DNA from: Anaeramoeba ignava BMAN | Lineage: Eukaryota > Protista > Anaeramoebae | Assembly (NCBI GenBank): GCA_028826165.1 | Contig: JAPDFW010000087.1 | Coordinates: forward strand, 186,001-250,000 | Reading direction: 5' to 3' | Length of the DNA: 64,000 nt | Program-made: the position numbers and the translations under genes | In this document: piece after piece, positions 4,501 to 51,775 of the stretch | How the letters are laid out: every line of letters begins with the position of its first letter | Numbering within the stretch: the stretch's first letter is position 1 | Notes under the pieces: model-generated | Seen by the model: the letters and a program-made list of their open reading frames with translations, nothing else | The model's database searches: none | What the model was told of the DNA's origin: nothing

Positions 4501-7500
4501 ATGCAACAACAAAACACAAATCAAAACACACAAAACACACAAAATAACACAAATTCAAATGAAAATCAAAACACAAATCAATTAAAACAAGTTTATGAAG
4601 CAATAAGAACAAATAATATTCAATTTTTTAATTCAATTCCAACTTTGAAAACAACAGAACAATTTGAAAAAGAAAATAAACCTTTTTTAAATTATGCTTT
4701 TGAACAAAAAATAAAAAATGAAATTATTCAAAAACTTATTGAAAAAGAAACTAATTTAAATTGGTTTGATAAATACAGAAATAATCCTTTACATATTGCT
4801 TTGAAAAATAAATACCCAAAAGAAATTATTGAATTATTAATTTCCAAAGGTTCTGATATTAATTCAAAAAATAATCAAAATGAAATACCTTTACATATTG
4901 CTTTGAAAAATCAATATTCAAAAGAAATTATTGAATTATTAATTTCCAAAGGATCTAATATTAATTCAAAAAATAATTTAAATGAAATACCTTTACATAT
5001 TGCTTTGCAAAATAAATATTCAAAAGAAATTATTGAATTATTAATTTCCAAAGGATCTGATATTAATTCAAAAAATGATTGGAATCAAATACCTTTACAT
5101 ATTGCTTTGATATACAAAAATCCAAAAGAAATTATTGAATTATTAATTTCCAATGGATCTGATATTAATTCAAAAAATTATTGGAATGAAATACCTTTAC
5201 ATATTGCTTTGCAAAATAAATATTCAAAAGAAATTATTGAATTATTAATTTCCAAAGGATCTGATATTAATTCAAAAAATAATTTAAATGAAATACCTTT
5301 ACATATTGCTTTGAAAAACCAATATCCAAATGAAATTATTGAATTATTAATTTCCAAAGAATCTGATATTAATTCAAAAAATAATTTAAATGAAATACCT
5401 TTACATATTGCTTTGCAAAATAAATATTCAAAAGAAATTATTGAATTATTAATTTCCAATGAATCTAATCTTAATTCAAAAATAGATGGAAAAGAAATAC
5501 CTTTACATATTGCTTTGAGATACCAAAATACAAAAGAAATTATTAAATTATTAATTTCCAAAGAATCTGATATTAATTCAAAAAATAATGAAAATGAAAT
5601 ACCTTTACATATTGCTTTGAAAAATAAATATCCAAAAGAGATTATTGAATTATTAATTTCCAAAGGATCTGATATTAATTCAAAAAATAATGAAAATCAA
5701 ATACCTTTACATATTGCTTTGAAAAACCAAAATTCAAATGAAATTATTGAATTATTAATTTCCAAAGAATCTGATATTAATTCAAAAAATAATCAAAATG
5801 AAATACCTTTACATATTGCTTTGAAAAATAAATATTCAAAAGAAATTATTAAATTATTAATTTCCAAAGGATCTGATATTAATTCAAAAAATAATTTAAA
5901 TCAAATACCTTTACATATTGCTTTGGAAAATAAATACTCAAACGAAATTATTAAATTATTAATTTTCAAAGGTTCTAATATTAATTCAAAAAATTATTGG
6001 AATGAAATACCTTTACATATTGCTTTGCAAAATAAATATCCAAAAGAAATTATTGAATTATTAATTTCCAAAAGATCTGATATTAATTCAAAAAATGATT
6101 GGAATCAAATACCTTTACATATTGCTTTGATATACAAAAATCCAAAAGAGATTATTGAATTATTAATTTCCAATGGATCTGATATTAATTCAAAAAATAA
6201 ATGGAATGAAATACCTTTACATTTTGCTTTGAAAAACAAATATTCAAAAGAAATTATTAAATTATTAATTTCCAAAGGATCTGATATTAATTCAAAAAAT
6301 AATCAAAATGAAATACCTTTACATATTGCTTTGAAAAACCAATATCCAAATGAAATTATTGAATTATTAATTTCCAATGAATCTGATATTAATTCAAAAA
6401 ATAATGAAAATGAAATACCTTTACATATTGCTTTGAAAAATAAATATCCAAAAGAAATTATTGAATTATTAATTTCCAATGAATCTAATCTTAATTCAAA
6501 AATAGATGGAAAAGAAATACCTTTACATTTTGCTTTGAAAAATAAATATTCAAAAGAAATTATTGAATTATTAATTTCTAAAGGATCTGATATTAATTCA
6601 AAAAATAATCAAAATGAAATACCTTTACATATTGCTTTGAAAAATAAATATCCAAAAGAAATTATTGAATTATTAATTTCCAATGAATCTAATCTTAATT
6701 CAAAAATAGATGGAAAAGAAATACCTTTACATTTTGCTTTGAAAAATAAATATTCAAAAGAAATTATTGAATTATTAATTTCCAAAGGATCTGATATTAA
6801 TTCAAAAATAGATGGAAAAGAAATACCTTTACATTTTGCTTTGAAAAATAAATATTCAAAACAAATTATTAAATTATTAATTTCCAAAGGATCTGATATT
6901 AATTCAAAAATAGATGGAAAAGAAATACCTTTACATTTTGCTTTGAAAAATAAATATTCAAAAGAAATTATTAAATTATTAATTTCCAAAGGTTCTGATA
7001 TTAATTCAAAAATAGATGGAAAAGAAATACCTTTACATTTTGCTTTGAAAAATAAATATTCAAAACAAATTATTAAATTATTAATTTCCAAAGGATCTGA
7101 TATTAATTCAAAAATAGATGGAAAAGAAATACCTTTACATTTTGCTTTGAAAAATAAATATCCAAATGAAATTATTAAATTATTAATTTCTAAAGGTTCT
7201 GATATTAATTCAAAAAATAATCAAAATGAAATACCTTTACATATTGCTTTGAAAAATAAATATCCAAATGAAATTATTGAATTATTAATTTCCAAAGAAT
7301 CTGATATTAATTCAAAAAATAATCAAAATGAAATACCTTTACATATTGCTTTGCAAAATAAATATTCAAAAGAAATTATTGAATTATTAATTTCCAAAGG
7401 ATCTGATATTAATTCAAAAATAGATGGAAAAGAAATACCTTTACATTTTGCTTTGAAAAACCAAAATTCAAAAGAAATCATTGAATTATTAATTTCCAAA

Positions 7501-10343
7501 GGATCTGATATTAATTCAAAAAATAATCAAAATGAAATACCTTTACATATTGCTTTGAAAAATAAATATTCAAATGAAATTATTAAATTATTAATTTCCA
7601 AAGGATCTGATATTAATTCAAAAAATAATCAAAATGAAATACCTTTACATTTTGCTTTGAAAAACCAATATCCAAATGAAATTATTGAATTATTAATTTC
7701 CAATGAATCTGATATTAATTCAAAAAATAATCAAAATGAAATACCTTTACATATTGCTTTGAAAAATCAATATTCAAAAGAAATTATTGAATTATTAATT
7801 TCCAAAGGATCTGATATTAATTTAATAAATAAATGGAATGAAATATCTTTAAATAATGCTTTGAAAAATAAATATCCAAATGAAATTATTGAATTATTAA
7901 TTTCCAAAGGATCTAATATTAATTCAAAAAATAATGAAAATGAAATACCTTTACATATTGCTTTGAAAAATAAATATTCAAATGAAATTATTGAATTATT
8001 AATTTCCAAAGGATCTAATATTAATTCAAAAAATAATGAAAAAGAAATACCTTTACATATTAATTGAAAAATAAATATTCAAAAGAAAATTAAAAAGAAA
8101 GGATCTGATATTAATTCAAAAATAATCAAAATCAAATACTTACTTTTGAAATTATTGAATTATTAATTTCCAAAGGATCTAATATTAATTCAAAAAATAA
8201 TCAAAATCAAATACCTTTACATATTGCTTTGAAAAATAAATATCCAAATGAAATTATTGAATTATTAATTTCCAAAGAATCTGATATTAATTCAAAAAAT
8301 GATTGGAATCAAATACCTTTACATATTGCTTTACAAAATAAATATCCAAAAGAAATTATTGAATTATTAATTTCTAAAGGATCTGATATTAATTCAAAAA
8401 ATTATCAAAATGAAATATCTTTAAATAATGCTTTGAAAAATAAATATCCAAATGAAATTATTGAATTATTAATTTCCAAAGGTTCTAATATTAATACAAA
8501 AAATAATTGGAATGAAATACCTTTACATATTGCTTTGATATACAAAAATCAATATTCAAAAGAAATTATTAAATTATTAATTTCCAAAGGTTCTGATATT
8601 AATTCAAAAAATAATAAAAATGAAATACCTTTACATATTGCTTTGAAAAATAAATATCTAAAAGAAATTATTGAATTATTAATTTCCAATGAATCTGATA
8701 TTAATTCAAAAAATAAATGGAATGAAATACCTTTACATATTGCTTTGAAAAATAAATACCCAAAAGAAATTATTGAATTATTAATTTCCAAAGGATCTGA
8801 TATTAATTCAAAAAATAATCAAAATCAAATACCTTTACATATTGCTTTACAAAATAAAAATCCAAATGAAATTATTGAATTATTAATTTCCAAAGGATCT
8901 GATATTAATTCAAAAAATAATAAAAATGAAATACCTTTACATATTGCTTTGGAAAAGAAATATTCAAAAGAAATTATAATTTTATTAATGAGAGATTTGA
9001 ATATTTTTGAATTGAAAGAAAATGAAATTAATCAAGAAATGATTGATTTATTTCCAAAAATTTATTCATTTAATGATGATTTAAACAATTTTTTGAAATC
9101 AAATGAATTTAAAGATATTGAAATTAAAAGTAGTGATAATGAAATATTTAAAGCTCATAATCAATTTTTATTAATTAGATTTAATAATAACCAAAAAAAT
9201 TTAACAAGATTTATTAATATTTGCAGAAGAAAACCAAAAGAAATTATTCAATTTGCATTAAATTTTCTTTATACAGGATTTATTGATTTTGATAAATTTA
9301 TTGAAAAATTTAATAATCAATTTATTCAAAATGAAACAAAAAATGATTCAAATTCAAATTCAAATTATCAATTTTTATTTTCAAATGAAATTGAATTTGA
9401 AAAACAAAAAAAAGAACAAGAATTAATTTTAAATGAAATTGAAAATAAAAATGAAGAATTTAAAAAAGGATTAATTTATGATTTATTTGAAGAAACAGGA
9501 TTTGATTTAAAATGGATTAAAGAAAAAGAAGGAATAAAAGGAATATTAAAAGATTTTGAAGAATTTTATCAACAAAATGAAACTAAAGATTTTACAATAA
9601 TTATTGAAGAAAAAGAAATTAAAGTTCATAAATTAATATTACAAATAAGAAGCGAATTATTTAAAGGAATGTTTTTAAGTGTTAATGATCCATCAAATCA
9701 AGTTCATGAATATTCAAAAAAATCATTTGAAACAATTCAACAATTAATTTATTTTCTTTATTATGATAAAATTGATGAAACAAAATTAACCAAAGAAAAT
9801 ATTGAAGAATTTACTGATTTAAAAGATTTTTATCAATTAAACCAAAAATCAATTTTAGGATCTTATTTACTTGATTTTTATCACAAATATTTATCAAAAA
9901 ATCAATATCAAAATCAAAATAAAAATAAAAACAAAAACAAAAAAAATAACCCAAAGCAAAACACAAATCAAATCACACAAAATAAAAATCAAAATCAAAA
10001 TCAAAATCAAAATCAAAATCAAAATCAAAATCAAAATCAAAATCAAAATCAAAATCAAAATCAAAATCAAAATCAAAATCAAAATCAAAATCAAAACCAA
10101 AATCAATATCCAAATCAATATCCAAATCAAAATCAAAATCAAAATCAAAATCAAAATCAAAATCAAAATCAAAATCAAAATCAAAATCAAAATCAAAATC
10201 AAAATCAAAATCAAAATCAAAATCAAAATCAAAATCAAAACCAAAATCAAAATCCAAAATCAATATCCAAAATCAAAATCAAAATCAAAATCAAAATCAA
10301 TATCCAAATCAATATCCAAATCAATATTCAAATCAATATTTAA
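4501..10343 (+). CDS. Intronless ankyrin-repeat (about 42 x 99-bp repeats) tandem-BTB protein with Q/N tail; frame break at about 8060-8150
   Basis: ORFs 4501-8067 and 8229-10343 carry the same 33-aa unit (NEIPLHIALKNKYSKEIIELLISKGSDINSKN). They are followed by BTB motifs FKDIEI...FKAH and KDFTIII...VHKLILQIRSELFKGMF. The garbled junction looks like a consensus error or a recent lesion, and the true stop is uncertain. Confidence 0.8.
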
Positions 10344-13451: not shown

Positions 13452-16400
13452 ATGCAACAACAAAACACAAATCAAAGCACACAAAACACACAAAATAACA
13501 CAAATTCAAATGAAAATCAAAACACAAATCAATTAAAACAAGTTTATGAAGCAATAAGAACAAATAATATTCAATTTTTTAATTCAATTCCAACTTTGAA
13601 AACAACAGAACAATTTGAAAAAGAAAATGAACCTTTTTTAAATTATGCTTTTGAACAAAAAATAAAAAATGAAATTATTCAAAAACTTATTGAAAAAGAA
13701 ACTAATTTAAATTGGTTTGATAAATACAGAAATAATCCTTTACATATTGCTTTGAAAAACCAATATTCAAATGAAATTATTGAATTATTAATTTCCAAAG
13801 AATCTGATATTAATTCAAAAAATAATGAAAATGAAATACCTTTACATATTGCTTTGAAAAATAAATATCCAAAAGAAATTATTGAATTATTGAATTATTA
13901 ATTTCTAAAGGATCTGATATTAATTCAAAAAATAATGAAAATGAAATACCTTTACATATTGCTTTGAAAAATAAATATTCAAATGAAATTATTAAATTAT
14001 TAATTTCCAAAGGATCTGATATTAATTCAAAAAATAATCTAAATGAAATACCTTTACATATTGAAATTTGAAAATAAATATAATTCAAAAGAAATGAAAT
14101 TTTTAATTTATTAAAAATTCAAAAGAAATATTGAATTATTAATTCAAAAAATGATGGAAAAGAAATACCTTTACATATTGCTTTGAAAAATAAATATCCA
14201 AATGAAATTATTGAATTATTAATTTCCAAAGGATCTGATATTAATTCAAAAAATAATCAAAATAAAATACCTTTACATATTGCTTTGAAAAATAAATATC
14301 CAAAAGAAATTATTGAATTATTAATTTCCAAAGGATCTGATATCAATTCAAAAAATAATCAGAATGAAATACCTTTACATATTGCTTTGAAAAATAAATA
14401 TTCAAAAGAAATTATTGAATTATTAATTTCCAAAGGATCTGATATTAATTCAAAAAATAATGAAAATGAAATACCTTTACATATTGCTTTGAAAAATAAA
14501 TATCCAAAAGAAATTATTGAATTATTAATTTCCAAAGGATCTGATATTAATTCAAAAAATAATCAAAATGAAATACCTTTACATATTGCTTTGAAAAATA
14601 AATATCCAAAAGAAATTATTGAATTATTAATTTCCAAAGGATCTGATATTAATTCAAAAAATAATCAAAATGAAATACCTTTACATATTGCTTTGAAAAA
14701 TAAATATCCAAAAGAAATTATTGAATTATTAATTTCCAAAGGATCTGATATTAATTCAAAAAATAATCAAAATGAAATACCTTTACATATTGCTTTGAAA
14801 AATAAATATCCAAAAGAAATTATTGAATTAATTCCAAAGGATTATATTTTCAAAAAGGATCAAATGATATTAATTCAAAAATAATCAAAATGAAATACCT
14901 TTACATATTGCTTTGAAAAATCAAAATATTCAAAATGAAATTATTGAATTATTAATTTCCAAAGGATCTGATATTAATTCAAAAAATAATCAAAATGAAA
15001 TACCTTTACATATTGCTTTGAAAAATAAATATTCAAATGAAATTATTGAATTATTAATTTCTAAAGGATCTGATATTAATTCAAAAAATAATCAAAATGA
15101 AATACCTTTACATATTGCTTTGAAAAATCAAAATTCAAAAGAAATTATTGAATTATTAATTTCCAAAGGATCTGATATTAATTCAAAAAATAATCAAAAT
15201 GAAATACCTTTACATATTGCTTTGAAAAATAAATATCTAAATGAAATTATTGAATTATTAATTTCCAAAGGATCTGATATTAATTCAAAAAATAATCAAA
15301 ATGAAATACCTTTACATATTGCTTTGAAAATATTCAAAAAGAAATTATTGAATTATTAATTTCCAAAGGATCTGATATTAATTCAAAAAATGATCAAAAT
15401 GAAATACCTTTAAAAATTGCTTTTGAAAAATAAAAATCAAAGAAATTATTTTTATTAATTTATTGCTTTAAAAATAAAAAAATGAAATTAAATTTTTTTA
15501 TTTATTTTTTGAAAAAAAAATATCCAAAAGAAATTATTGAATTATTAATTTCAAAAATAATCAAATGAAATAAATACCTTTACATATTGCTTTGAAAATA
15601 AATATTCAAAAAGAAATTATTGAATTATTAATTTTCAAAAAGGATCTGATATTAATTCAAAAATAATCAAAATGAAATAATTTTACATATTGCTTTGAAA
15701 AATAAAAATTCAAAAAGAAATTATTGAATTATTAATTTCCAAAGGATCTGATATTAATTCAAAAATAATCAAAATCAAATACCTTTACATATTGCTTTGA
15801 AAACCAAAATTCAAAAGAAAATTGAATCCAAATGGAATTATAATTCAAAAATAATGGAAGTGAAATATTGAGAGATTGCTTTAAAAATAAATATTTTTGA
15901 AATTAAGAAATTTCAAAAAATGACAAAATTTAATTTTGAAATAATTGAAAATTTATTTCCAAAAATTTATTCATTTAATGAAGATTTAAACAATTTTTGA
16001 AATCAAATGAATTTAAAGATATTGAAATTTAAAAGTAGTGATAATCAAAAATATTCAAAAAAGCTCATAAACAATTTTATAAATTAATTTATCAAACAAA
16101 TTTTCAAAAATACAAAATGAAATTATTAATATTTAAAAAGAAAACAAAAAAAAGAAATTATTCAATTCAAATTAAATTTCATTTTATACAAAATTTATTG
16201 ATTTTGATAAATTTATTGAAAAATTCAAAAATCAATTTATTCAAAATTAAACAAAAAAAAAAATCAAAATTTTCAATTTTATTTTCAAATGAAATTGAAT
16301 TTGAAAAACAAAAAAATTTAATTCAAAAAATTAATTTTAAATGAAATTGAAAAAAATCAAATGAAAGAATTTAAAAAAAGGATTAATTTAATATTTATTT

Positions 16401-32267: not shown

Positions 32268-35200
32268 ATGAATTTGGAACAATTAATTAACAAAAAAGAT
32301 TTAAAATCAATTCAAAAATTCTTTTCTGATAATAAAAATCTTGATAAAGTTAATAATTAATTAATTTTATTTATCATTTTAATTATCATTTTATTTTTTT
32401 TTCTAAATATTAAAAAAGTTGGAAAAAGCTTTTGAAATTGCTTTTAAAGAAACTTTTGAAGATAATTCAATTATTGATTATTTACTTAGTATCACTCAAA
32501 AAATTTCTGTAAGTAAAAAAAAAATTAATAAAATTTTAATTGTAAATTTTTTAATATTTTTTTTTGAAATTTTGAAAAGTTTAATATTTTGCAATTTGCT
32601 TGTTTTTCTCAAAATTTAAAAGCTATTGAAACAATTTTAAATCGAGAAAAAGAAATTTCAAAAGTAAAAATTGATCAATTTAAATTAAAAAAAATTTTAT
32701 AAAATTAATTTTTTTAATCAATTTGTTTTTTAGTTTGAAAAATTAATTTCTCAAAAAAAAGTAAATTATTTTTGAAATAAACAAATTAGGAATTAAAATA
32801 ATTTTTCAATTTAAATTCCCCTTTTTATATTTAGGATGTAAAAAATTTAAATTAAATTTTCTTTTTAAATTTTAAATTTTTTGAATGAAAATTTTATTAT
32901 TTAGCACAATACAATTCTTCATATACTTTTTGATAAGAAAAACTCAATAAATTTGGAAATTCTTGAATTATTATATAAACATGGTTGTGAAATTGAAGTT
33001 GAAAATGTAAGAATAAAGTAAATAAAAATAATTTGGATTAAATTTAAATAAATATATTTTTAGAAAGTAAATTCTTATTTAAAAATAAGAGAAAATATGG
33101 GAATTAAAGAGAAAAAAAATAATTTTAGTTAGTATTTAATTTGAATTTTAAATTTGGAATTGAATTTAATTTGGATTTTAAATTTGGAATTGAATTTAAT
33201 TTGAATTTTAAATTTGGAATTGAATTTAATTTGAAATTGAATTTAATTTGAATTTTAAATTTGAAATTGAATTTGATTTGGATTTTAAATTTGGAATTGA
33301 ATTTAATTTGAATTTTAAATTTGGAATTGAATTTAATTTGAATTTTAAATTTGGAATTGAATTTAATTTGAATTTTAAATTTGGAATTGAATTTAATTTG
33401 GAATTGAATTTAATTTGGAATTGAATTTAATTTGAATTTAATTTGAATTTTAAATTTGGAATTGAATTTAATTTGAATTTTAAATTTGAAATTGAATTTA
33501 ATTTGAATTTTAAATTTGAAATTGAATTTGATTTGAATTTTAAATTTGGAATTGAATTTAATTTGAATTTAATTTGAATTTTAAATTTGGAATTGAATTT
33601 AATTTGGATTTAATTTGGAATTTAAATTTGGAATTGAATTTAATTTGGAATTGAATTTAATTTGGAATTGAATTTAATTTGAATTTAATTTGAATTTTAA
33701 ATTTGGAATTGAATTTAAATTTGGAATTGAATTAAATTTGAAATTGAATTTAATTTGGAATTTAAATTTGGAATTGAATTAAAATTGAATTTAATTTGGA
33801 ATTGAATTTAATTTGAATTTTAAATTTGGAATTGAATTTAATTTGAATTTTAAATTTGGAATTGAATTTAATTTGAATTTAATTTGGAATTTAAATTTGG
33901 AATTGAATTTAATTTGGAATTGAATTTAATTTGGAATTGAATTTGATTTGGATTTAATTTGAATTTTAAATAGTGTTTAACACCTTTACATCTTGCTTGT
34001 AAAAATCAATACACTATTGAAATCATTTCATTTTTAGTTAATTCTGGTTCAAATATTAATGCAAAAGATGTATTTATTAAATTTATTAATTTTAAAATAA
34101 ATTAATTTTAAATCAAAAAAAAAATAAGATTGTATTTTTATTTTCATAAAGTTTATAAAGAATTTATTTTATAACAATTTTAAAAAAAAAAGAAAGTAAA
34201 TTTGTTTTTAGTTTGTGATTATTTAAATGAAAAATTCTCAAAATAAAAACTTATTTTTAAAAGGATAATACTCCTTTGCATTTCGTTTGTGAAAATAAAC
34301 CAATTCAAACTAATGTTTTAGAATTTTTACTTTCAAAAGGAGCTGATCCAAATATTAAGAATGTAAATTTCAAAAAAAAAAAGAAAAAAGAAAAAAATAT
34401 TTGATTGATTAATTTTTTTATTTAGTTTGTAAAATTTTTCATCATTTAAAAAAGAATAATTTGATAGTTAATAATTTTGTTTCTTTGATTTTAGGATGTA
34501 ATCTTAAAATTATTATTAAATAATTTGAATAAAATTTATGATCCACTTCTTTCTTTCTAGAGAGTTTCGCCAATATTTTTAGCTTGTCAGAAAAATGATT
34601 ATAATTCAATAAAAATGTTAGTTGATAACGGAGCTCATTCATATTTTATTTCAGTAATTAAATTCTTTGATTGTAATTAATTAATTATTTATTTATTTAA
34701 TTAATTAAATTTAGAAAGTAAAAATTGATTTATTTTTATGAAAAATGGAAATTTAAATTTAAAATAATTAGGATGTAAAAAAATCAAAAAGGGAAATAGA
34801 TTTAATTGAATTTTATTCGTTTATAAATTTTGTTTTTGTTTTTGTTTTTGGAATTATAGTTAAGAAATGTTTTCCATTTTTGTGATTCAAAAAATATAGA
34901 ATGGAAAACAATTGAATTATTAATAAATTCTGGAGCTAATCCACATTTTGCAGATGTATCACTTTTATTCATTATTTATTTATTATTTGCTTAAATTTTT
35001 TTTTTTTGAAAAGGTTGTAAAATTTGAAAAGAAATTGAATTAAAAGATAAATTTGGAATTAAAAATCAATATATAAAAAAGTATGTAAAATTTATAAAAT
35101 CAAGAATTGTAAAATGAATAATATTAACTATAAAAATTAATAGGGAAGAGTATTTATTGAATCTTTCCCAAATTTAAAAGAACGAGTAAAATCCTTATAT

Positions 35201-35842
35201 TCTATTGTTGAGGATATGAAAAAACTCTTCACATCTCAAGTTTTAACAGATCTTGAAATCCCAACTTTGAATGGGAATATTAAGGCACACAAATTGATTC
35301 TTTCAAAAAGAATTGGAGAATCATTAATGGAAAAAGCAATGGAAGTTTTTGAACAAGAATCAAAAACAGAAGTGTGGAATTTTTTGATTTTTATTTATTC
35401 AGGAAGTTATGAAAATTTTATGGAAATTAAGAAAATGGCACAAAAAATTGGAATGAAAAATTTAAATTCAATGTTTTCAAAAGCTTCTGTTTTAAAGTTT
35501 CTCAAGCAATTATATGGAGATGATGAATCAAAAGATTTTGAAATTTCAACAGATGAAGGAAGTATTCGAGTTCATAAATTAATAATGGCTGCGAGAAGCG
35601 ATTTGTATAACGGAATGTTTTTGAATGTTGAAGATGATTCGAATCGAGTTAAAGATTATAGTGGTAGATCTCATAAAGCTATTTTTCAAGTTATTAAGTT
35701 TATTTATTGTGATAATTTGGATGATGATTTGTCTCAAGATATTATTTCAGAACTCAAAGATGTAGTTGAATATTATCAATTTAATTCCAATTCTTATTTT
35801 TCATTTATTTTGGAAGATCTTGAAGAAAAGCAAAAAAAATAA
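32268..35842 (+). CDS. Ankyrin-repeat tandem-BTB protein (499 aa predicted), 21 exons: 32268-32348, 32419-32508, 32580-32663, 32734-32760, 32835-32837, 32905-33006, 33064-33066, 33129-33131, 33974-34069, 34129-34131, 34193-34195, 34264-34362, 34426-34428, 34495-34497, 34561-34653, 34715-34717, 34772-34774, 34860-34955, 35014-35016, 35082-35084, 35144-35842
   Basis: All 20 introns are GT-AG and phase 0, and 19 are 54-85 nt. The spliced frame is stop-free, restores canonical ankyrin spacing (e.g. NAKD-I-K-DNTPLH), and runs into the BTB ORF 35216-35842 (VHKLIMAARSDLYNGMFLNV). Confidence 0.88.
32835..35084 (+). other. Eleven single-codon (3-nt) micro-exons: GAT 32835, AAA 33064, TTA 33129, ATT 34129, AAA 34193, TTT 34426, GAT 34495, AAA 34715, GAT 34772, GTT 35014, TAT 35082
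   Basis: Each reads AG-NNN-GTA, lies 54-74 nt after the previous donor, is a sense codon, and falls at the ankyrin D-x-x-G positions. Confidence 0.85.
33135..33970. repeat. Composite (TTGGAATTGAATTTAAT...)n satellite filling the 842-nt intron after micro-exon TTA
   Basis: Visible repeat; I saw no internal AG or GT on the sense strand. Confidence 0.9.
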
Positions 35843-35942
35843 AAATAATAAGAAAAAGAAAAAAATTTTTTTTTTTGATCCACTTTTTTTATAAATAATA
35901 AAAATAATAAAAATAATAAAAAGAAACTAAAACTTAATTCAT

Positions 35943-37521
35943 TCAATTTTGCCATTTCCATAACATTTCACTATTTTCAACTTCAAGCATTTCTTTTGTT
36001 CGAAAATCCAAAACTTTTGCTTCACCAGCATTTGAAGTAGCCAATAAAACACCATCACGAAATTCAACCGATAAAACCCAAGTATTTCTTTCGAATTCCT
36101 TAAAAGTATGAACAGGGCCAGCAGAGAGTTTTCTTCTATCCCAAACCTTGATTGTTGAATCAAAACTAGAAGTGACAAGAACATCAGAATCAAATTGCAA
36201 ATAAGAAACGGTACTTTGATGACCTCTCAAGACATCGATACATCTTTTTGAAGAACGAAGATCCCAGACACGGCAAGTATTATCATATCCACCACTGATA
36301 ATAATATCACCATCATATTGCAACGTGGAAATTGGACGTTCATGACCAACAAGAAGATCAACTTCTTTTTCTGTTTGGATGTTCCACCATCTGAGTGCTG
36401 TATCACGAGAGCCAGTAATCAATCTATCTCCAACATAATCAAGTGCCCAAATGCTATCCGAGTGATGGATAATTCCTTTTGTTTTGTGAGTAGTTATGTC
36501 CCAAATTCTCACATCTGTGTCATATGATCCACTTATGATTTTTTCTTCGTCAAGCTTCATACAAGCAACAGGACCGTGATGTCCCTTGAACACAACTGGA
36601 ACCAAATTGAACTCATCTTTTCTTTCTTCTTCGTTTGCTTCGTTGTTATGATTATTTATGTGATTATTGATGTGATCCAGGTTTATTTTTGCAGATCTTT
36701 TTTGTGTTTGATCATAAAGTTGTTGGAATTTTTTATGTGAAGGCAAGTTGTAAAGATGGATTTCTTGATCTTTTCCTCCACTTACTAATTGGGTTCGTTG
36801 TTTGTTAACATCAAGAGACCAGATTGGGCCTGTATGTGGAGTTGGAAGTGTTAGAACTTTTCTTTTTTTTGATATTTCCCATAATTTTACTGTTCCATCC
36901 CAATTACAAGTTGCATATTGATCGATTCCTGTAAATTTCGCACCATTTACTCCAGGTTGATATCTAATATTTGCAGGTTGTCTATATTTTTGTTTGAACC
37001 ACTTTTAAATTTAAATTTAATTTTAATTTTCAAAATGAATTTTAATTTCAAAATGAATTTTAATTTCAAAATGAATTTTAATTTCAAAATGAATTTTAAT
37101 TTCAAAATGAATTTTAATTTCAAAATGAATTTTAATTTCAAAATGAATTTTAATTTTTTGGTTAGTTCAAAATTAGAAAAAGTGGAAAAAAAAATTTTTT
37201 TTTTTTTAATCTTAATAAATTTAAATTTACTTTTTGTTTCCAAATTGTTCGAAAAATATAATATTTTTTCCAAGATCTAAGTGATGGAGGTGGAACTGGA
37301 ACATTTTCTAAATGTGGATTATGTGATTTAAATAATAATTTCCAAACATAAGGATCATTTGAAATTTCATTAAAAGTTCTTGAAACACTTGATAATTTAA
37401 TTAGATTTTGATCATCAAGAAATTGGAAAATATAAATTATTAATTCTTCAGGAAGTTGAGAAAAATTTCCCATTGTTTCTTGATTTATTTTAAAATTTTT
37501 TTGAGAGTTTTTATTTCCCAT
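35943..37521 (-). CDS. F-box/WD40 protein (Cdc4/FBXW7/beta-TrCP-like); exons 37521-37231 and 37001-35943
   Basis: F-box FSQLPEELIIYIFQFLD...LSSVSRTFNEISNDPYVWK; WD repeats GHHGPV...ISGSYDTDVRIWD and GHERPI...SGGYDNTCRVWD; phase-0 intron containing an 18-bp repeat. Confidence 0.88.
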
Positions 37522-37689
37522 TTAAATTAAAAAAAATTAAAAAAACAAAAATTGAATAATGAAATTAAAAAAATCTAAATAAAAAAAATGGAACAAAAAA
37601 CACGTATTTTAAAAATAAAAATAAAAAAGAAAAAAGAAAAAATTTTTATTTAATCAAAACACGTTTTTTATTTAATTAAAAAAAAAAAA

Positions 37690-39770
37690 TTTAATCTAAA
37701 TTTAATTTTAAATTAATTTCTAAATTAAATATTAATTCAAAATATATTTAAATATTAATATTTTATTTATCAAAATATTTATTAATTTTTTAATAATAAA
37801 ATATAATAAAAATAATTTAATTTATAATTTAAAATATTTATTAAATTTAATTTTAAATTAATTTATTAATTAAATATTAATTCAAAATATATTTAAATAT
37901 TAATATTTTATTTATAAAAATATTAATTAATTTTTTAATAATAAAATATAATAAAAATAATTTAATTTATAATTTAAAATATTTATTAAATTTAATTATA
38001 AATTAATTTATAAATTAAATATTAATTCAAAATATATTTAAATATTAATATTTTATTTATAAAAATATTTATTAATTTTTAATAATAAAATATAATTAAA
38101 ATAATTTAATTTATAATTTAAAATATTTATTAAATTTAATTTTAAATTAATTTATAAATTAAATATTAATTCAAAATATATTTAAATATTAATATTTTAT
38201 TTATCAAAAATATTTATTAATTTTTAATAATAAAATATAATAAAAATAATTTAATTTATAATTTAAAATATTTATTAAATTTAATTATAAATTAATTTAT
38301 AAATTAAATATTAATTCAAAATATATTTAAATATTAATATTTTATTTATCAAAATATTTATTAATTTTTAATAATAAAATATAATAAAAATAATTTAATT
38401 TATAATTTGAAATATTTATTAAATTTAATTTTAAATTAATTTATTAATTAAATAATATTTCAAAATATATTTAAATATTAATATTTTTATTTATCAAAAT
38501 ATTAATTAATTTTTAATAATAAAATATAATAAAAATAATTTAATTTATAATTTGAAATATTTATTAAATTTAATTATAAATTAATTTATAAATTAAATAT
38601 TAATTCAAAATATATTTAAATATTTATATTTTATTTATAAAAATATTTATTAATTTTTAATAATAAAATATAATAAAAATAATTTAATTTATAATTTAAA
38701 ATATTTATTAAATTTAATTATAAATTAATTTATAAATTAAATATTAATTCAAAAATATATTTAAATATTAATATTTTATTTATCAAAATATTTATTAATT
38801 TTTAATAATAAAATATAATTAAAATAATTTAATTTATAATTTAAAAATATTTATTAAATTTAATTATAAATTAATTTATAAATTAAATATTAATTCAAAA
38901 TATATTTAAATATTAATATTTTATTTATCAAAATATTTATTAATTTTTAATAATAAAATATAATAAAATAATTTAATTTATAATTTGAAATATTTATTAA
39001 ATTTAATTTTAAATTAATTTCTAAATTAAATATTAATTCAAACTATATTTAAATATTAATATTTTATTTATAAAAATATTTATTAATTTTTAATAATAAA
39101 ATATAATTAAAATAATTTAATTTATAATTTGAAATATTTATTAAATTTAATTATAAATTAATTTATAAATTAAATATTAATTCAAAATATATTTAAATAT
39201 TAATATTTAATTTATCAAAATATTTATTAATTTTTAATAATAAAAATATAATTAAAATTATTTAATTTATAATTTGAAATATTTATTAAATTTAATTTTA
39301 AATTAATTTATAAATTAAATATTAATTCAAAAAATATATTTAAATATTAATATTTAATTTATCAAAATATTTATTAATTTTTAATAATAAAATATAATAA
39401 AAATAATTTAATTTATAATTTGAAATATTTATTAAATTTAATTTTAAATTAATTTCTAAATTAAATATTAATTCAAAAATATATTTAAATATTAATATTT
39501 TATTTATCAAAATATTAATTAATTTTTAATAATAAAATATAATAAAAATAATTTAATTTATAATTTAAAATATTTATTAAATTTAATTTTAAAATTAATT
39601 TATAAATTAAATATTAATTCAAAATATATTTAAATATTAATATTTTATTTATCAAAATATTTATTAATTTTTTAATAATAAAATATAATTAAAATAATTT
39701 AATTTATAATTTAAAATATTTATTAAATTTAATTTTAAATTAATTTATAAATTAAATATTAATTCAATCT
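37690..39770. repeat. Tandem array of about 14.5 copies of a 143-146-bp, nearly pure-AT monomer
   Basis: The anchor C of TTCAA recurs at 37738, 37883, 38028, 38172, 38317, 38461, 38606, 38750, 38896, 39039, 39183, 39328, 39474, 39620 and 39765, with a partial copy near 39923. Confidence 0.95.
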
Positions 39771-43999: not shown

Positions 44000-44102
44000 T
44001 TTTAATAAAGAAAAAAAAAAAATGAAAATCGAAAAAATGAAAAATGAAAAATGAAAAATGAAAAATGAAATTTTATTTTTTCATTTTTTTTCTTTTTCTA
44101 AA

Positions 44103-45899
44103 ATGAATGAAATTTTATTTTTTGGTAGAAATCTATATCCAAAACTTTTCAAAAATAAACCAATTAAAATAATAAAACCAATTCAATTTAAATTTGAAAA
44201 TGAAAATGAAAATGAAAATGAAAATGAAAATGAAAATGAAAAACAAATTAAACAAATTTCATCGGGTTATTTTTCAACAATTTTCCTTTTTGAAAACGGA
44301 AAAGCAATAGAATATTTAAATGAAAATCCTGAAAAAATCCAAATTGAAAATATTCAAAAAGTAACTGTTGGTCTTGAAAATGAAGCTATTTTAACAATAG
44401 AAGGAAATGTATTTGCAAAAGGGATAGATATTAATCCATATAATCCAAATAAATTTATCAATATTTCATCATTAATTGAAGATACAAATGATAGAATAAT
44501 TCAAGATATTGTTTCTGGATGGAGTTCAATTTACTTATTAACTTCAAATCAAAATGCTTATGGAATTGGTTCAAATCAATATGGTCAACTTGGTTTTGAT
44601 TCTAAAACACTTAAAAAAACAGAAAAACCAATTTTAATGATGAAAAATGTTTCTAAAATATTTTCAGGAAATTCTTCTGAAGGTGTCTTTCTTTTAAATT
44701 CAAATCAAGAATTATTTGGATGCGGATATAATCAATATAGCCAACTTGGATTAGGAGAATTAAGAAAAACAATAAGAATACAAAAATTAACCAAAATCCA
44801 AAATATTCCAAAAGGTAAAATAATTGATATTCAATGTGGAAGTTTTCATTCAATAATGTTGGTTGAAAATGAAGATGAAAATAAAAATCCAAAAAGAAAA
44901 CTTTATTCATGTGGAAATTGGAAATATAATGGATTTGGCAAAAATAAAGATACTTATGAATTTACTGAAATCAAATCATCTTTATTTGAAAATGATGAAA
45001 ATATTCTTGATTTTTCTGTTGGAGATGAACATAATTTGATTTTAACATCCAAAGGGAAAGTTATTGGATTCGGAAATAATTTATATGGTCAATTAGGAAC
45101 TGGAAATATAAAAAATCAAAGAATTCCAATTCAAATTAAACTTCCTAAATTAAGATTTAATGAAGAAATTTCTAATTATCATATTTCTTGTGGATATCGA
45201 AAATCATTTCTTTATTATTCTCCTTTTCTTTCTCCTTTTTCCAATCTTGAAGAAGATTTGATAAAATTATTTGGAAGAAAAGAATTTTGTGATATTTCAT
45301 TTAAAACCGAAAATGGAGAAATAGTTGAAGCTCATAAATTAATATTGAAATATAGATTAAATCAAAATCAAGAAAATCAAATTGATAAACTTCAAGAAAT
45401 TATTTCAAAGAAATCAATTAAAGAATCAAATCAAATATTTGAAATGATTTATTCAAACAGAATATTAAATCCAAAATTATATTATGAAATTAAAGAAATT
45501 ATAAATTCAAATGAAAAAATTGAAGAAACAATGAAAAGAATTTATTTAAATGAAAATGAAAATGAAAAAGATTTTATTATTGAAAGAAAAGAAAAACAAT
45601 ATAAATTTCCAAAATTAATATTAATAATGAGAAGTGAATTATATCGAGGAATGTTTTTATCTGTAACAAATGATAAATCTAACAAAGTTAGAGATTATAG
45701 TGAATTAAGTAATAAATCATTTCAAATATTTGAATATTGGATTTATTCAAATCAAATTAAAGATGATATTCAAATTACTCAGGAAATCATTAATGAATTA
45801 GAAATAGGAATTGATTATTTTCAATTAAATCAAACAAATCCAAATTTATTTGATTTATTAATTAACAAATTTAAAAATCAAAATCAAAATCAAAATTAA
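44103..45899 (+). CDS. RCC1-repeat tandem-BTB protein, copy 1
   Basis: RCC1 motifs GSNQYGQLG and FGNNLYGQLG; BTB FCDISF...AHKLIL and LIMRSELYRGMF. Start placed at MNEILFFG by comparison with the paralogs. Confidence 0.88.
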   Translation: MNEILFFGRNLYPKLFKNKPIKIIKPIQFKFENENENENENENENEKQIKQISSGYFSTIFLFENGKAIEYLNENPEKIQIENIQKVTVGLENEAILTIEGNVFAKGIDINPYNPNKFINISSLIEDTNDRIIQDIVSGWSSIYLLTSNQNAYGIGSNQYGQLGFDSKTLKKTEKPILMMKNVSKIFSGNSSEGVFLLNSNQELFGCGYNQYSQLGLGELRKTIRIQKLTKIQNIPKGKIIDIQCGSFHSIMLVENEDENKNPKRKLYSCGNWKYNGFGKNKDTYEFTEIKSSLFENDENILDFSVGDEHNLILTSKGKVIGFGNNLYGQLGTGNIKNQRIPIQIKLPKLRFNEEISNYHISCGYRKSFLYYSPFLSPFSNLEEDLIKLFGRKEFCDISFKTENGEIVEAHKLILKYRLNQNQENQIDKLQEIISKKSIKESNQIFEMIYSNRILNPKLYYEIKEIINSNEKIEETMKRIYLNENENEKDFIIERKEKQYKFPKLILIMRSELYRGMFLSVTNDKSNKVRDYSELSNKSFQIFEYWIYSNQIKDDIQITQEIINELEIGIDYFQLNQTNPNLFDLLINKFKNQNQNQN

Positions 45900-45957
45900 A
45901 ATTAAAATTAAAATTAAATTCAAAAATTCATTTTTTCATTTTTTTTTCTTTTCAAAA

Positions 45958-47751
45958 ATGAATGAAGTTATATTTTTTGGTAGAAATCTATATCCAAAAC
46001 TTATCAAAAATGAACCAGATATAATAACAAAACCAATTCAATTTAAATTTGAAAATGAAAATGAAAATGAAAATGAAAATGAAAAACAAATTAAACAAAT
46101 TTTTTCAGGTTATTCTGGAACATTTTTCCTTTTTAAAAATGGGAAATTAATACAATACTTGAAATATTTAGATTCAAATAAAAATATACAAACAATTAAA
46201 ATTGAAATTGAAAATATTCAAAAAGTATTTCCTGGTGATAATAATGTAGCTATTTTAACAATAGAAGGAAATGTATTTGCAAAAGGGATAGATATTAATC
46301 CAAAAAATCCAAATAAATTTATCAATATTTCATCATTAATTGAAGATACAAATGATAGAGTAATTCAAGATGTTATTTGCACAATGAACTCAATTTACTT
46401 ATTAACTTCAAATCAAAATGTTTATGGAATTGGTTCAAATCAATATGGTCAACTTGGTTTAGATTCTGAGACACTTGAAAAAACACAAAAGCCAATTTTA
46501 ATGATGAAAAATGTTTCTAAAATATTTTCAGGAAGTTCTTCATATTCTGTTTTTCTTTTAAATTCAAATCAAGAATTATTTGGATGCGGAATCAATTATA
46601 ATTCCAAACTTGGATTAGGGAAATCAAAAAAAGAAGAATACATCAAAAAATTAACCAAAATCCAAAATATTCCAAAAGGCAAAATAATTGATATCCAATC
46701 TGGATATTCTTTTTCAGTAATGTTGATTGAAAATGAAAATGAAAATGAAAATCCAAAAAGAAAACTTTATTCATGTGGTGTTTATGAATATAATGGATTT
46801 GGCAAAGATCAAAATACTTATGAATTTACTGAAATCAAATCATCTTTATTTGAAAATGAAAATGATAATATTCTTGATTTTTCTGTTGGAAATGCTCATA
46901 CTTTGATTTTAACAACCAATTCAAAATTGATAGGATTTGGAAATAATTATTATGGTGAATTAGGAAATGGAAATACAAATAATCAGCGAATTCCAATTCA
47001 AATTGAACTTCCTAAATTAAGATTTAATGAAAATATTTCCAATTATCATATTCTTTGTAGAAATGAAAAATCATTTCTTTATTATTCTCCTTTTCTTTCT
47101 CCTTTTTCCAATCTTGAAGAAGATTTGATAAAATTATTTGGAAGAAAAGAATTTTGTGATATTTCATTTAAAACCAAAAATGGAGAAATAATTGAAGCTC
47201 ATAAATTAATATTGAAATATAGATTAAATCAAAATCAAAATGAAATTGAAAAACTTAAAGAAATTATTTCAAAAAAATCAATTAAAGAATCAAATCAAAT
47301 ATTTGAAATGATTTATTCAAACAGAATAATAAATCCAAAATTATATTCTGAAATTAAAGAAATTATAAATTTAAATGAAAAAATTGAAGAAGCAATGAAA
47401 AGAATTTATTTAAATGAAAATGAAAATGAAAAAGATTTTATAATTGAAAGAAAAGAAAAACAATATAAATTTCCAAAATTAATATTAATAATGAGAAGTG
47501 AATTATATCGAGGAATGTTTTTATCTGTAACTAATGATACTTCTAATAAAGTTAGAGATTATAGTGAATTAAGTAATAAATCATTTCAAATATTTGAATA
47601 TTGGATTTATTCAAATCAAATTAAAGATGAAATTCAAATTACTCAGGAAATCATTGATGAATTAGAAACTGGAATTGATTATTTTCAATTAAATCAAACA
47701 AATCCAAATTTATTTGATTTATTAATTAACAAATTTAATAATCAAAATTAA
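45958..47751 (+). CDS. RCC1-repeat tandem-BTB protein, copy 2
   Basis: 597-aa ORF, close paralog of copy 1. Confidence 0.9.
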   Translation: MNEVIFFGRNLYPKLIKNEPDIITKPIQFKFENENENENENEKQIKQIFSGYSGTFFLFKNGKLIQYLKYLDSNKNIQTIKIEIENIQKVFPGDNNVAILTIEGNVFAKGIDINPKNPNKFINISSLIEDTNDRVIQDVICTMNSIYLLTSNQNVYGIGSNQYGQLGLDSETLEKTQKPILMMKNVSKIFSGSSSYSVFLLNSNQELFGCGINYNSKLGLGKSKKEEYIKKLTKIQNIPKGKIIDIQSGYSFSVMLIENENENENPKRKLYSCGVYEYNGFGKDQNTYEFTEIKSSLFENENDNILDFSVGNAHTLILTTNSKLIGFGNNYYGELGNGNTNNQRIPIQIELPKLRFNENISNYHILCRNEKSFLYYSPFLSPFSNLEEDLIKLFGRKEFCDISFKTKNGEIIEAHKLILKYRLNQNQNEIEKLKEIISKKSIKESNQIFEMIYSNRIINPKLYSEIKEIINLNEKIEEAMKRIYLNENENEKDFIIERKEKQYKFPKLILIMRSELYRGMFLSVTNDTSNKVRDYSELSNKSFQIFEYWIYSNQIKDEIQITQEIIDELETGIDYFQLNQTNPNLFDLLINKFNNQN

Positions 47752-47982
47752 AAATAAAATTAAAATTAAAATTAAAATCAAAATCAAAATCAAAATCAAA
47801 ATCAAAATCAAAATCAAAATCAAAATCAAAATCAAAATCAAAATCAAAAAGGAAAATGCTTAATTTATTAAATTAATTTATTACTCAAACCAAAATTAAA
47901 ATTCAAAATCAAAATTAAAATTAAAATTAAAATTAAAATTAAAATTTCAAAAATCATTTTTTCATTTTTTTTCTTTTCAAAA

Positions 47983-49758
47983 ATGAATGAAATTATATTT
48001 TTTGGTAGAAATCTATATCCAAAACTTATCAAAAATGAACCAGATATAATAACAAAACCAATTCAATTTAAATTTGAAAATGAAAATGAAAATGAAAATG
48101 AAAAACAAATTAAACAAATTTTTTCAGGTTATTCTGGAACATTTTTCCTTTTTAAAAATGGGAAATTAATACAATACTTGAAATATTTAGATTCAAATAA
48201 AAATATACAAACAATTAAAATTGAAATTGAAAATATTCAAAAAGTATTTCCTGGTGATAATAATGTAGCTATTTTAACAATAGAAGGAAATGTATTTGCA
48301 AAAGGGATAGATATTAATCCATATAATTCAAATGAATTTATCAATATTTCATCATTAATTGAAGATACAAATGATAGAATAATTCAAGATGTTATTTGCA
48401 CAATGAACTCAATTTACTTATTAACTTCAAATCAAAATGCTTATGGAATTGGTTCAAATCAATATGGTCAACTTGGTTTAGATTCTGAGACACTTGAAAA
48501 AACACAAAAACCTATTTTAATGATGAAAAATGTTTCTAAAATATTTTCAGGAAGTTCTTCATATTCTGTTTTTCTTTTAAATTCAAATCAAGAATTATTT
48601 GGATGCGGAATCAATTATAATTCCAAACTTGGATTAGGGAAATCAAAAAAAGAAGAATACATCAAAAAATTAACCAAAATCCAAAATATTCCAAAAGGCA
48701 AAATAATTGATATCCAATCTGGATATTCTTTTTCAGTAATGTTGATTGAAGATGAAAATGAAAATCCAAAAAGAAAACTTTATTCATGTGGTGTTTATGA
48801 ATATAATGGATTTGGCAAAGATCAAAATACTTATGAATTTACTGAAATCAAATCATCTTTATTTGAAAATGATAATATTCTTGATTTTTCTGTTGGAAAT
48901 GCTCATACTTTGATTTTAACAACCAATTCAAAATTAATTGGATTTGGAGATAATTATTATGGTGAATTAGGAAATGGAAATACAAATAATCAACGAATCC
49001 CGATTCAAATTGAACTTCCTAAATTAAGATTTAATGAAAATATTTTCAATTATCATATTCTTTGTAGAAATGAAAAATCATTTATTTATTATTCTCCTTT
49101 TCTTTCTCTTTTTTCCAATCTTGAAGAAGATTTGATAAAATTATTTAGAAGAAAAGAATTTTGCGATATTTCATTTAAAACCAAAAATGGAGAAATAGTT
49201 GAAGCTCATAAATTAATATTGAAATATAGATTAAATGAAATTCAAAATCAAATTGAAAAACTTAAAGAAATTATTTCAAATAAATCAATTAAAGAATCAA
49301 ATCAAATATTTGAAATGATTTATTCAAACAGAATATTAAATCCAAAATTATATTTTGAAATTAAAGAAATTATAAATTCTAATGAAAAAATTGAAGAAAC
49401 AATGAAAAGAATTTATTTAAATGAAAATGAAAATGAAAAAGATTTTATAATTGAAAGAAAAGAAAAACAATATAAATTTCCTAAATTAATATTAATAATG
49501 AGAAGTGAATTATATCGAGGAATGTTTTTATCTGTAACTGAAGATAAATCAAATAAAGTTACAGATTATAGTGAATTAAGTAATAAATCATTTCAAATAT
49601 TTGAATATTGGATTTATTCAAATCAAATTAAAGATGAAATTCAAATTACTCAAGAAATCATTGATGAATTAGAAACAGGAATTGATTATTTTCAATTAAA
49701 TCAAACAAATCCAAATTTATTTGATTTATTAATTAACAAATTTAATAATCAAAATTAA
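47983..49758 (+). CDS. RCC1-repeat tandem-BTB protein, copy 3
   Basis: 591-aa ORF, close paralog. Confidence 0.9.
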   Translation: MNEIIFFGRNLYPKLIKNEPDIITKPIQFKFENENENENEKQIKQIFSGYSGTFFLFKNGKLIQYLKYLDSNKNIQTIKIEIENIQKVFPGDNNVAILTIEGNVFAKGIDINPYNSNEFINISSLIEDTNDRIIQDVICTMNSIYLLTSNQNAYGIGSNQYGQLGLDSETLEKTQKPILMMKNVSKIFSGSSSYSVFLLNSNQELFGCGINYNSKLGLGKSKKEEYIKKLTKIQNIPKGKIIDIQSGYSFSVMLIEDENENPKRKLYSCGVYEYNGFGKDQNTYEFTEIKSSLFENDNILDFSVGNAHTLILTTNSKLIGFGDNYYGELGNGNTNNQRIPIQIELPKLRFNENIFNYHILCRNEKSFIYYSPFLSLFSNLEEDLIKLFRRKEFCDISFKTKNGEIVEAHKLILKYRLNEIQNQIEKLKEIISNKSIKESNQIFEMIYSNRILNPKLYFEIKEIINSNEKIEETMKRIYLNENENEKDFIIERKEKQYKFPKLILIMRSELYRGMFLSVTEDKSNKVTDYSELSNKSFQIFEYWIYSNQIKDEIQITQEIIDELETGIDYFQLNQTNPNLFDLLINKFNNQN

Positions 49759-50026
49759 AAATAAAATTAAAATTAAAATTAAATTCAAAATCAAAATTAA
49801 AATCAAAATCAAAATCAAAATCAAAAAGGAAAATGCTTAATTTATTAAATTAATTTATTACTCAAATCAAAATCAAAATCAAATTATAATCCAAAATTAA
49901 AATTAAAATTAAAATTAAAATTAAAATTAAAATTAAAATTAAAATAATTAAAATTAAAATTAAAATTAAAATTAAATTCAAAAAATTCAAAAATTCATTT
50001 TTTTCATTTTTTTTTTCTTTTCAAAA

Positions 50027-51775
50027 ATGAATGAAATTATATTTTTTGGTAGAAATCTATATCCAAAACTTATCAAAAATGAACCAGATATAATAACAAA
50101 ACCAATTCAATTTAAATTTGAAAATGAAAATGAAAATGAAAATGAAAAACAAATTAAACAAATTTTTTCAGGTTATTCTGGAACATTTTTCCTTTTTAAA
50201 AATGGGAAATTAATACAATACTTGAAATGTTTAGATTTAAATAAAAATATACAAACAATTAAAATTCAAATTGAAAATATTCAAAAAGTATCTCCTGGTA
50301 GTAATAATGTAGCTATTTTAACAATAGAAGGAAATGTATTTGCAAAAGGAGAAGATATTAATCCAAATGAATTTATCAATATTTCATCATTAATTGAAGA
50401 TAAAAATGATAGAATAATTGAAGATATTGTTTCTGGAAAAAATTCAATTTACTTATTAACTTCAAATCAAAATGCTTATGGAATTGGTTCAAATCAATAT
50501 GGTCAACTTGGTTTAGATTATGAAACATTTAAAGAAACAAAACCAATTTTAATAATGAAAAATGTTTCTAAAATATTTTCAGGAAGTTCTTCAATTCATA
50601 TTTTTCTTTTAAATTCAAATCAAGAATTATTTGGATGCGGAATCAATTATAATTCCAAACTTGGATTAGGAGAATCAAGAAAAAAAGAAATCAAAATCAA
50701 TAAACTAACCAAAATCCAAAATATTCCAAAAGGCAAAATAATTGATATCCAATCTGGATATTCTTTTTCAATAATGTTGATTGAAAATGAAAATGAAAAT
50801 CCAAAAAGAAAACTTTATTCATGTGGAGATTATCAATGTAATGGACTTGGAAAAGATGAAGATACTTATGAATTTACTGAAATCAAATCACCTTTATTTG
50901 AAAATGATGATGGTATTCTCGATTTTTCTGTTGGTAATTTCCATACTTTGATTTTAACTTACAAATCAAAATTGATTGGATTTGGAATTAATGATTTTGG
51001 TCAATTAGGAAATAAAGATAGAAATCAATCTCAACCAATTCCAATTCAAATTGAACTTCCTGAATTAAGATTTAATAAAGATATTTTCAATTATCATATT
51101 CTTTGTAGAAATGAAAAATCATTTATTTATTATTCTCCTCCTTCTTTTTCTAATCTTGAAGAAGATTTGATAAAATTATTTGAAAGAAAAGAATTTTGTG
51201 ATATTTCATTTAAAACCAAAAATGGAGAAATAATCAAAGCTCATAAATTAATATTGAAATATAGATTAAATCAAAATGAAAATCAAATTGAAAAACTTCA
51301 AGAAATTATTTCAAAGAAACCAATTAAAGAATCAAATCAAATATTTGAAATGATTTATTCAAATAATTCCAAAATAAATTCAAAATTATATTCTGAAATT
51401 AAAGAAATTATAAATTCAAATGAAAAAATTGAAGAAACAATTAAAAGAATTTATTTAAATGAAAATGAAAATGAAAATGATTTTATAATTGAAAGAAAAG
51501 AAAAAGAATATAAATTTCCAAAATTAATATTAATAATGAGAAGTGAATTATATCGAGGAATGTTTTTATCTGTAACAAATGATAAATCTAATAAAGTTAA
51601 AGATTATAGTGAATTAAGTAATAAATCATTTCAAATATTTGAATATTGGATTTATTCAAATCAAATTAAAGATGGAATTCAAATTACAAAAGAAATCATT
51701 AATGAATTTAAAAAAGGAATTGATTATTTTCAATTAAATCAAACAAATCCAAATTTATTTGGATTTATTAATTAG
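50027..51775 (+). CDS. RCC1-repeat tandem-BTB protein, copy 4 (1-nt insertion near 51761 alters the last few codons)
   Basis: 582-aa ORF ending NLFGFIN instead of the paralogs' NLFDLLINKF. Confidence 0.88.
   Translation: MNEIIFFGRNLYPKLIKNEPDIITKPIQFKFENENENENEKQIKQIFSGYSGTFFLFKNGKLIQYLKCLDLNKNIQTIKIQIENIQKVSPGSNNVAILTIEGNVFAKGEDINPNEFINISSLIEDKNDRIIEDIVSGKNSIYLLTSNQNAYGIGSNQYGQLGLDYETFKETKPILIMKNVSKIFSGSSSIHIFLLNSNQELFGCGINYNSKLGLGESRKKEIKINKLTKIQNIPKGKIIDIQSGYSFSIMLIENENENPKRKLYSCGDYQCNGLGKDEDTYEFTEIKSPLFENDDGILDFSVGNFHTLILTYKSKLIGFGINDFGQLGNKDRNQSQPIPIQIELPELRFNKDIFNYHILCRNEKSFIYYSPPSFSNLEEDLIKLFERKEFCDISFKTKNGEIIKAHKLILKYRLNQNENQIEKLQEIISKKPIKESNQIFEMIYSNNSKINSKLYSEIKEIINSNEKIEETIKRIYLNENENENDFIIERKEKEYKFPKLILIMRSELYRGMFLSVTNDKSNKVKDYSELSNKSFQIFEYWIYSNQIKDGIQITKEIINEFKKGIDYFQLNQTNPNLFGFIN

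Follow-up and report, generated by a model that had tools for sequence, protein, structure and literature searches.

One-codon exons encode the hairpin-tip residues of an ankyrin-BTB gene and many of its relatives in Anaeramoeba ignava

To assess the gene structure of an ankyrin-BTB locus in the anaerobic amoeba Anaeramoeba ignava BMAN, we analyzed a window of 64,000 nucleotides (GCA_028826165.1, contig JAPDFW010000087.1, positions 186,001 to 250,000; all window coordinates below count from the first letter of this stretch). Rebuilding the gene from coordinates gave 21 exons on the forward strand from 32268 to 35842, separated by 20 GT..AG introns that are all phase 0 and 54-85 nt long except for one of 842 nt, with a CDS of 1,500 nt (499 aa). 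Eleven of the exons are 3 nt long, one alone and five in pairs, and read D, K, L, I, K, F, D, K, D, V and Y, as in the preliminary description. The gene begins with exon 1 (32268-32348; start codon and N-terminal cap region), followed by two degenerate repeats in exon 2 (32419-32508) and exon 3 (32580-32663) and by exon 4 (32734-32760), a 27-nt exon that is predicted only and splits a 171-nt gap into typical introns of 70 and 74 nt. A predicted single Asp codon exon (32835-32837) precedes exon 6 (32905-33006; one ankyrin repeat), and predicted Lys (33064-33066; repeat position 2) and Leu (33129-33131; repeat position 3) codon exons are followed by the 842-nt intron (33132-33973), which is filled by a short-unit satellite. 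Exon 9 (33974-34069; one ankyrin repeat, PF00023, E-value 5e-8) is followed by predicted Ile (34129-34131) and Lys (34193-34195) codon exons, exon 12 (34264-34362; one ankyrin repeat), Phe (34426-34428) and Asp (34495-34497) codon exons, exon 15 (34561-34653; one ankyrin repeat), Lys (34715-34717) and Asp (34772-34774) codon exons, exon 18 (34860-34955; a diverged ankyrin repeat), and Val (35014-35016) and Tyr (35082-35084) codon exons. The last exon (35144-35842) encodes the end of the ankyrin stack plus two predicted tandem BTB folds.

Domain searches were performed with single exons, the public protein P0001 and transcript proteins of sister genes. Four of the five one-repeat exons hit Pfam ankyrin models (two of them weakly), whereas exon 18 had no Pfam hit on its own; ankyrin hits were also obtained on P0001, which had no NACHT hit. 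The last exon hit BTB (PF00651, E-value 2.5e-10, the second of the two folds) and gave weak matches to the BTB domains of KLHL26 and KLHL22. The tandem arrangement was taken from a predicted structure of the sister protein P0248 (pLDDT 93.6), which shows seven ankyrin repeats and two BTB folds with the inserted residues in the loops between repeats, and which matched DARPins and natural ankyrins in a Foldseek search. The hits and this model identify an ankyrin-repeat protein, with tandem repeats of about 33 residues, the TPLH motif and a helix-turn-helix/hairpin fold.

The public model KAJ5071568.1 contains a part identical to the last exon, has 479 residues, joins the large exons directly while staying in frame, and lacks exactly the eleven codons and the 27-nt exon 4. 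We therefore considered whether the triplets are chance intronic AG-NNN-GT words. The pattern AG-NNN-GTA occurs 12 times in the 1,592 nt around the junctions against 0.5 in dinucleotide shuffles (maximum 3), and every other spacing from 0 to 9 nt occurs 0-2 times; one of the 12 is the end of exon 12 (34360-34362) and not a micro-exon. RNA contigs were aligned to 3,001 nt (33950-36950), leaving out the 5' half because of the satellite intron. One contig in run X3 (depth 57.8) and one in run X4 (depth 8.5; a different sample and study) skip all introns from exon 12 to exon 21 and leave exactly 6 letters at each of the three hairpin junctions covered; at the middle junction 9 letters are unaligned, being 6 plus 3 masked bases of exon 18. 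Of the inserted letters, only the start of the last pair was resolved, as GT, in agreement with the GTT codon. A processed retrocopy as the source of these contigs is unlikely, because only one 100% copy of the last exon is in the assembly and both runs cover the exons with essentially no intron coverage, so they are RNA although labelled DNA or unknown. The X3 contig runs to 35979, into the end of the convergent WD40 gene (stop at 35943), which reflects overlapping 3' ends or merged contigs. Neither run showed a high-identity contig for exon 9, and both contigs end within 15 letters of the start of exon 12, which may be due to filtering, 3' bias, repeats or isoform heterogeneity upstream.

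Letter-level support was obtained from two sister genes. The transcriptome protein P0151 has QE, KV, YM and MF where the genome model P0005 has nothing, and these are the codons found between the introns of the corresponding paralogue locus, L044. The transcriptome protein P0248 has seven such pairs relative to the genome model P0018, and the three that lie in the retrieved DNA match, so that the predicted residues are present at all 7 junctions that could be compared. Direct joining of the large exons is thus refuted at the three junctions of the window gene with RNA coverage and is very unlikely overall, while the five upstream codon exons and exon 4 stand as predictions. The observation made in the preliminary description, a 21-exon gene with eleven single-codon exons, held up, with the correction that these exons cover repeat positions 2 and 3 only and not all of the variable binding residues.

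The layout is family-wide. At least 150 loci share the BTB exon, and many carry the same pairs upstream. Across the mapped paralogues (about 20 genes chosen by similarity to this one, from DNA of 50 retrieved loci that left out 60 further paralogue loci), 59 junctions have two codon exons, 13 have one and 34 have none. The 131 codons contain no stop (about 9.6 expected; P about 5e-5) and show GC1 > GC2 > GC3, as in coding sequence. A scan of the whole genome found 1,148 paired 3-nt units, compared to 112 for 4 nt and 74 for 6 nt, most of the latter in simple repeats or coding repeats; a reversed-pattern control gave 767, so the length controls and the local shuffles are the better null.

We next asked what the codons contribute to the repeat. 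In ankyrins of other organisms the stretch between the conserved G-x-x-x-N and the T-P-L motif is 7 residues in 206 of 259 cases and 5 in one. In A. ignava genome models it is usually 5, and adding the codon exons makes it 7 in 30 of 36 junctions. Where one codon is already part of a large exon there is usually one codon exon, and two paralogues (loci L021 and L045) use a single 6-nt exon at the same hairpin position where most paralogues have two 3-nt exons. The exon count is therefore tied to the fold rather than offering a surplus menu of codons. The codon exons fall on the D-x-x-G hairpin positions. DARPin libraries randomize six positions (PMC9611651), of which only two are affected here; in DARPin numbering the six are 2, 3, 5, 13, 14 and 33, and the codon exons correspond to 2 and 3.

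Residue entropy at the two positions is 3.5 and 3.75 bits, compared to 3.4 and 3.5 when the same positions are embedded in ordinary exons of this family, 3.6 and 3.6 in other organisms, and 3.4-3.6 at neighboring variable positions in ordinary exons, so hypervariability of the codon exons was not seen. Aromatic residues are modestly enriched at position 3 (19/59 against 12/77; Fisher P = 0.025, uncorrected). The same two positions are among the most variable in an intronless 32-repeat array in this window (4501-8067), so variability there does not need micro-exons. This array is part of a region (4501-10343) of about 40 near-identical 34-residue ankyrin repeats that ends in a BTB domain and is split over two ORFs, with hairpin position 3 the most variable site, and a second, broken array lies at about 13730-15830. 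The window also contains four tandem ORFs of about 600 residues (44058-51775), the first an RCC1-repeat plus BTB protein and the other three beginning with nearly identical sequence, which form a recent cluster of another BTB adaptor type, and a satellite of 145-nt units (37684-39767; 14 copies at 96% identity, about 3% GC).

The preliminary description proposed that the locus could generate a combinatorial, codon-by-codon repertoire of recognition surfaces for a ubiquitin-ligase adaptor, an immune-like diversification system. This interpretation was only partly supported: the micro-exons are real and spliced in, they sit at the beta-hairpin tip, the protein is ankyrin plus BTB and the truffle precedent it invoked exists, but diversification is not shown. 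Both RNA runs give one isoform with every codon included over three junctions, although assembled contigs drop rare variants, so that rare skipping cannot be excluded. Simple skipping can only shorten the loop, and loops two residues short are almost absent in ankyrins of other organisms (1 of 259). Substitution would need re-pairing across repeats, which requires long-range skipping in a genome of short introns and for which there is no evidence. The uniform phase 0, which had been taken to keep any skipping or cross-repeat joining in frame, is weak evidence, because it follows from 3-nt exons placed at one phase-0 position and the ordinary introns of these genes are phase 0 too. In favor of splice-level diversification, all combinations stay in frame, 459 paths would keep two residues at every hairpin used if repeats can be skipped, the layout converges on one reported as alternatively spliced in Tuber, and the missing exon 9 contig could be caused by upstream heterogeneity, although it has mundane explanations. 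Some other ankyrin genes carry longer chains: at locus L035 (G000:C2:7158-9496, minus strand), ankyrin exons downstream of a kinase ORF are separated by chains of 3, 10, 10 and 4 codon exons with diverged introns, and the two chains of ten would give equally long 14-residue loops if fully included, making this the best candidate for a true menu, although its upstream ORFs look frameshifted in the assembly. We regard splice-level diversification, possibly used in handling symbionts or parasites, as possible but unlikely on present evidence. If codon exons at hairpin tips and in longer chains were skipped or re-paired at appreciable, possibly regulated rates, which is doubtful but not excluded, A. 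ignava would have independently evolved a splice-based receptor repertoire, and a family of more than a hundred ubiquitin-ligase adaptors would yield many more binding surfaces, convergent with truffle NLRs.

To address the origin of the layout, we examined three homologues from one A. flamelloides assembly. These have occasional single phase-0 introns just after repeat position 1, the first of the three positions used here, with no codon exons and no excess of 3-nt units. The simplest reading is gain of two more introns at the next codon boundaries in the A. ignava line, though the direction (gain in A. ignava versus loss in A. flamelloides) is not proven and rests on three genes and no outgroup. 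Elsewhere in the genome, BTB-BACK and BTB-TLDc (BTB-BACK-TLDc) genes (loci L031, at G000:C1:409404-413130, minus strand, L032, L033 and L034) hold chains of 10-15 codon-sized units between adjacent introns that are 91-98% identical, while adjacent codons are only 33-48% identical; one unit in L031 reads as a stop under a looser scan. Local intron copying in 3-nt steps therefore appears to be recent or ongoing and is not limited to ankyrin loops. The introns of the window gene show no detectable mutual similarity (mean z = -0.06), so recent intron duplication inside this gene was not detected, its layout is old, and intron copying there is inferred by analogy. The contrast between similar introns and dissimilar codons, together with the slight aromatic enrichment, would also fit a DNA-level evolvability device, in which AT-rich introns on both sides of each contact codon let recombination or gene conversion swap, add or delete one residue without frameshift, so that the codons evolve as cassettes. 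We consider this unlikely, since in the ankyrin family the introns are fully diverged, so that homology for exchange is gone, and entropy is not raised over the embedded controls.

Taken together, we favor, with moderate confidence, a reading in which this is a real, expressed ankyrin/tandem-BTB gene, probably a substrate adaptor for a Cullin-3 ligase, in which the two hairpin-tip residues of each repeat are encoded by constitutively included one-codon exons. In this view, introns of about 70 nt and about 92% A+T would be recognized across the intron and removed one by one, which would put no lower limit on exon length; the layout would have arisen when two further introns were gained next to an older phase-0 intron that A. 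flamelloides also has, and would then have spread by repeat and gene duplication; purifying selection would keep the loop at canonical length; and binding diversity would lie mainly between repeats and paralogues in the DNA rather than between splice forms. Our data demonstrate the exon structure, inclusion in the main mRNA at three junctions, family-wide conservation and the fit to loop length, whereas we infer splicing by intron definition, origin by serial intron gain, and the Cullin-3 adaptor role with its Cul3 binding and substrate ubiquitination. Several A. ignava cullin genes scored over the Pfam cut-off, without being typed as Cul3, and tandem-BTB ankyrin adaptors bind Cul3 in fission yeast (PMC1257465). 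Against this reading, constitutive inclusion rests on assembled contigs, and retention of about 1,150 such pairs is costly and may need a benefit.

The closest precedent is the NACHT-ankyrin (nank) genes of the truffle Tuber melanosporum (Iotti et al. 2012, as cited in PMC4986451 and PMC13449251), an expanded ankyrin family with multiple codon-sized exons that are reported to be extensively alternatively spliced; the present genes belong to a metamonad rather than a fungus, have tandem BTB folds instead of a NACHT/NLR architecture, and have no alternative splicing shown, so that they share the layout but are not members of that family. Schistosoma micro-exon genes (MEGs; PMC10526429) likewise contain runs of very short, mostly in-frame exons missed by automatic annotation, but MEG exons are mostly 15 nt with long introns and encode secreted proteins with many isoforms, whereas here 3-nt exons with about 70-nt introns fill fixed positions of a folded repeat and contribute 11 of 499 residues. 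The domain order, N-terminal ankyrin repeats followed by two tandem BTB folds, is that of S. pombe Btb3p and the two-ankyrin, two-BTB type of Cullin-3 adaptors (PMC1257465), but with more repeats, no C-terminal helical region after the second BTB, and lineage-specific expansion. The A. ignava genome paper describes introns with a mode of 76 nt and 8% GC (PMC11550330), but term searches of its text and supplements found no mention of micro-exons, and we found no paper describing this layout in Anaeramoeba.

The public protein set for A. ignava is systematically wrong at the binding loops of its ankyrin proteins: all 18 short-loop proteins whose source was looked up were A. ignava genome models. 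Codon-sized exons in expanded ankyrin families of both a truffle and a metamonad suggest convergence, and make the diversification question directly testable with RNA reads that already exist. Even with no alternative splicing, A. ignava is a eukaryote that routinely splices consecutive 3-nt exons at hundreds of places, which offers a natural test of intron definition and of how introns are gained next to existing introns.
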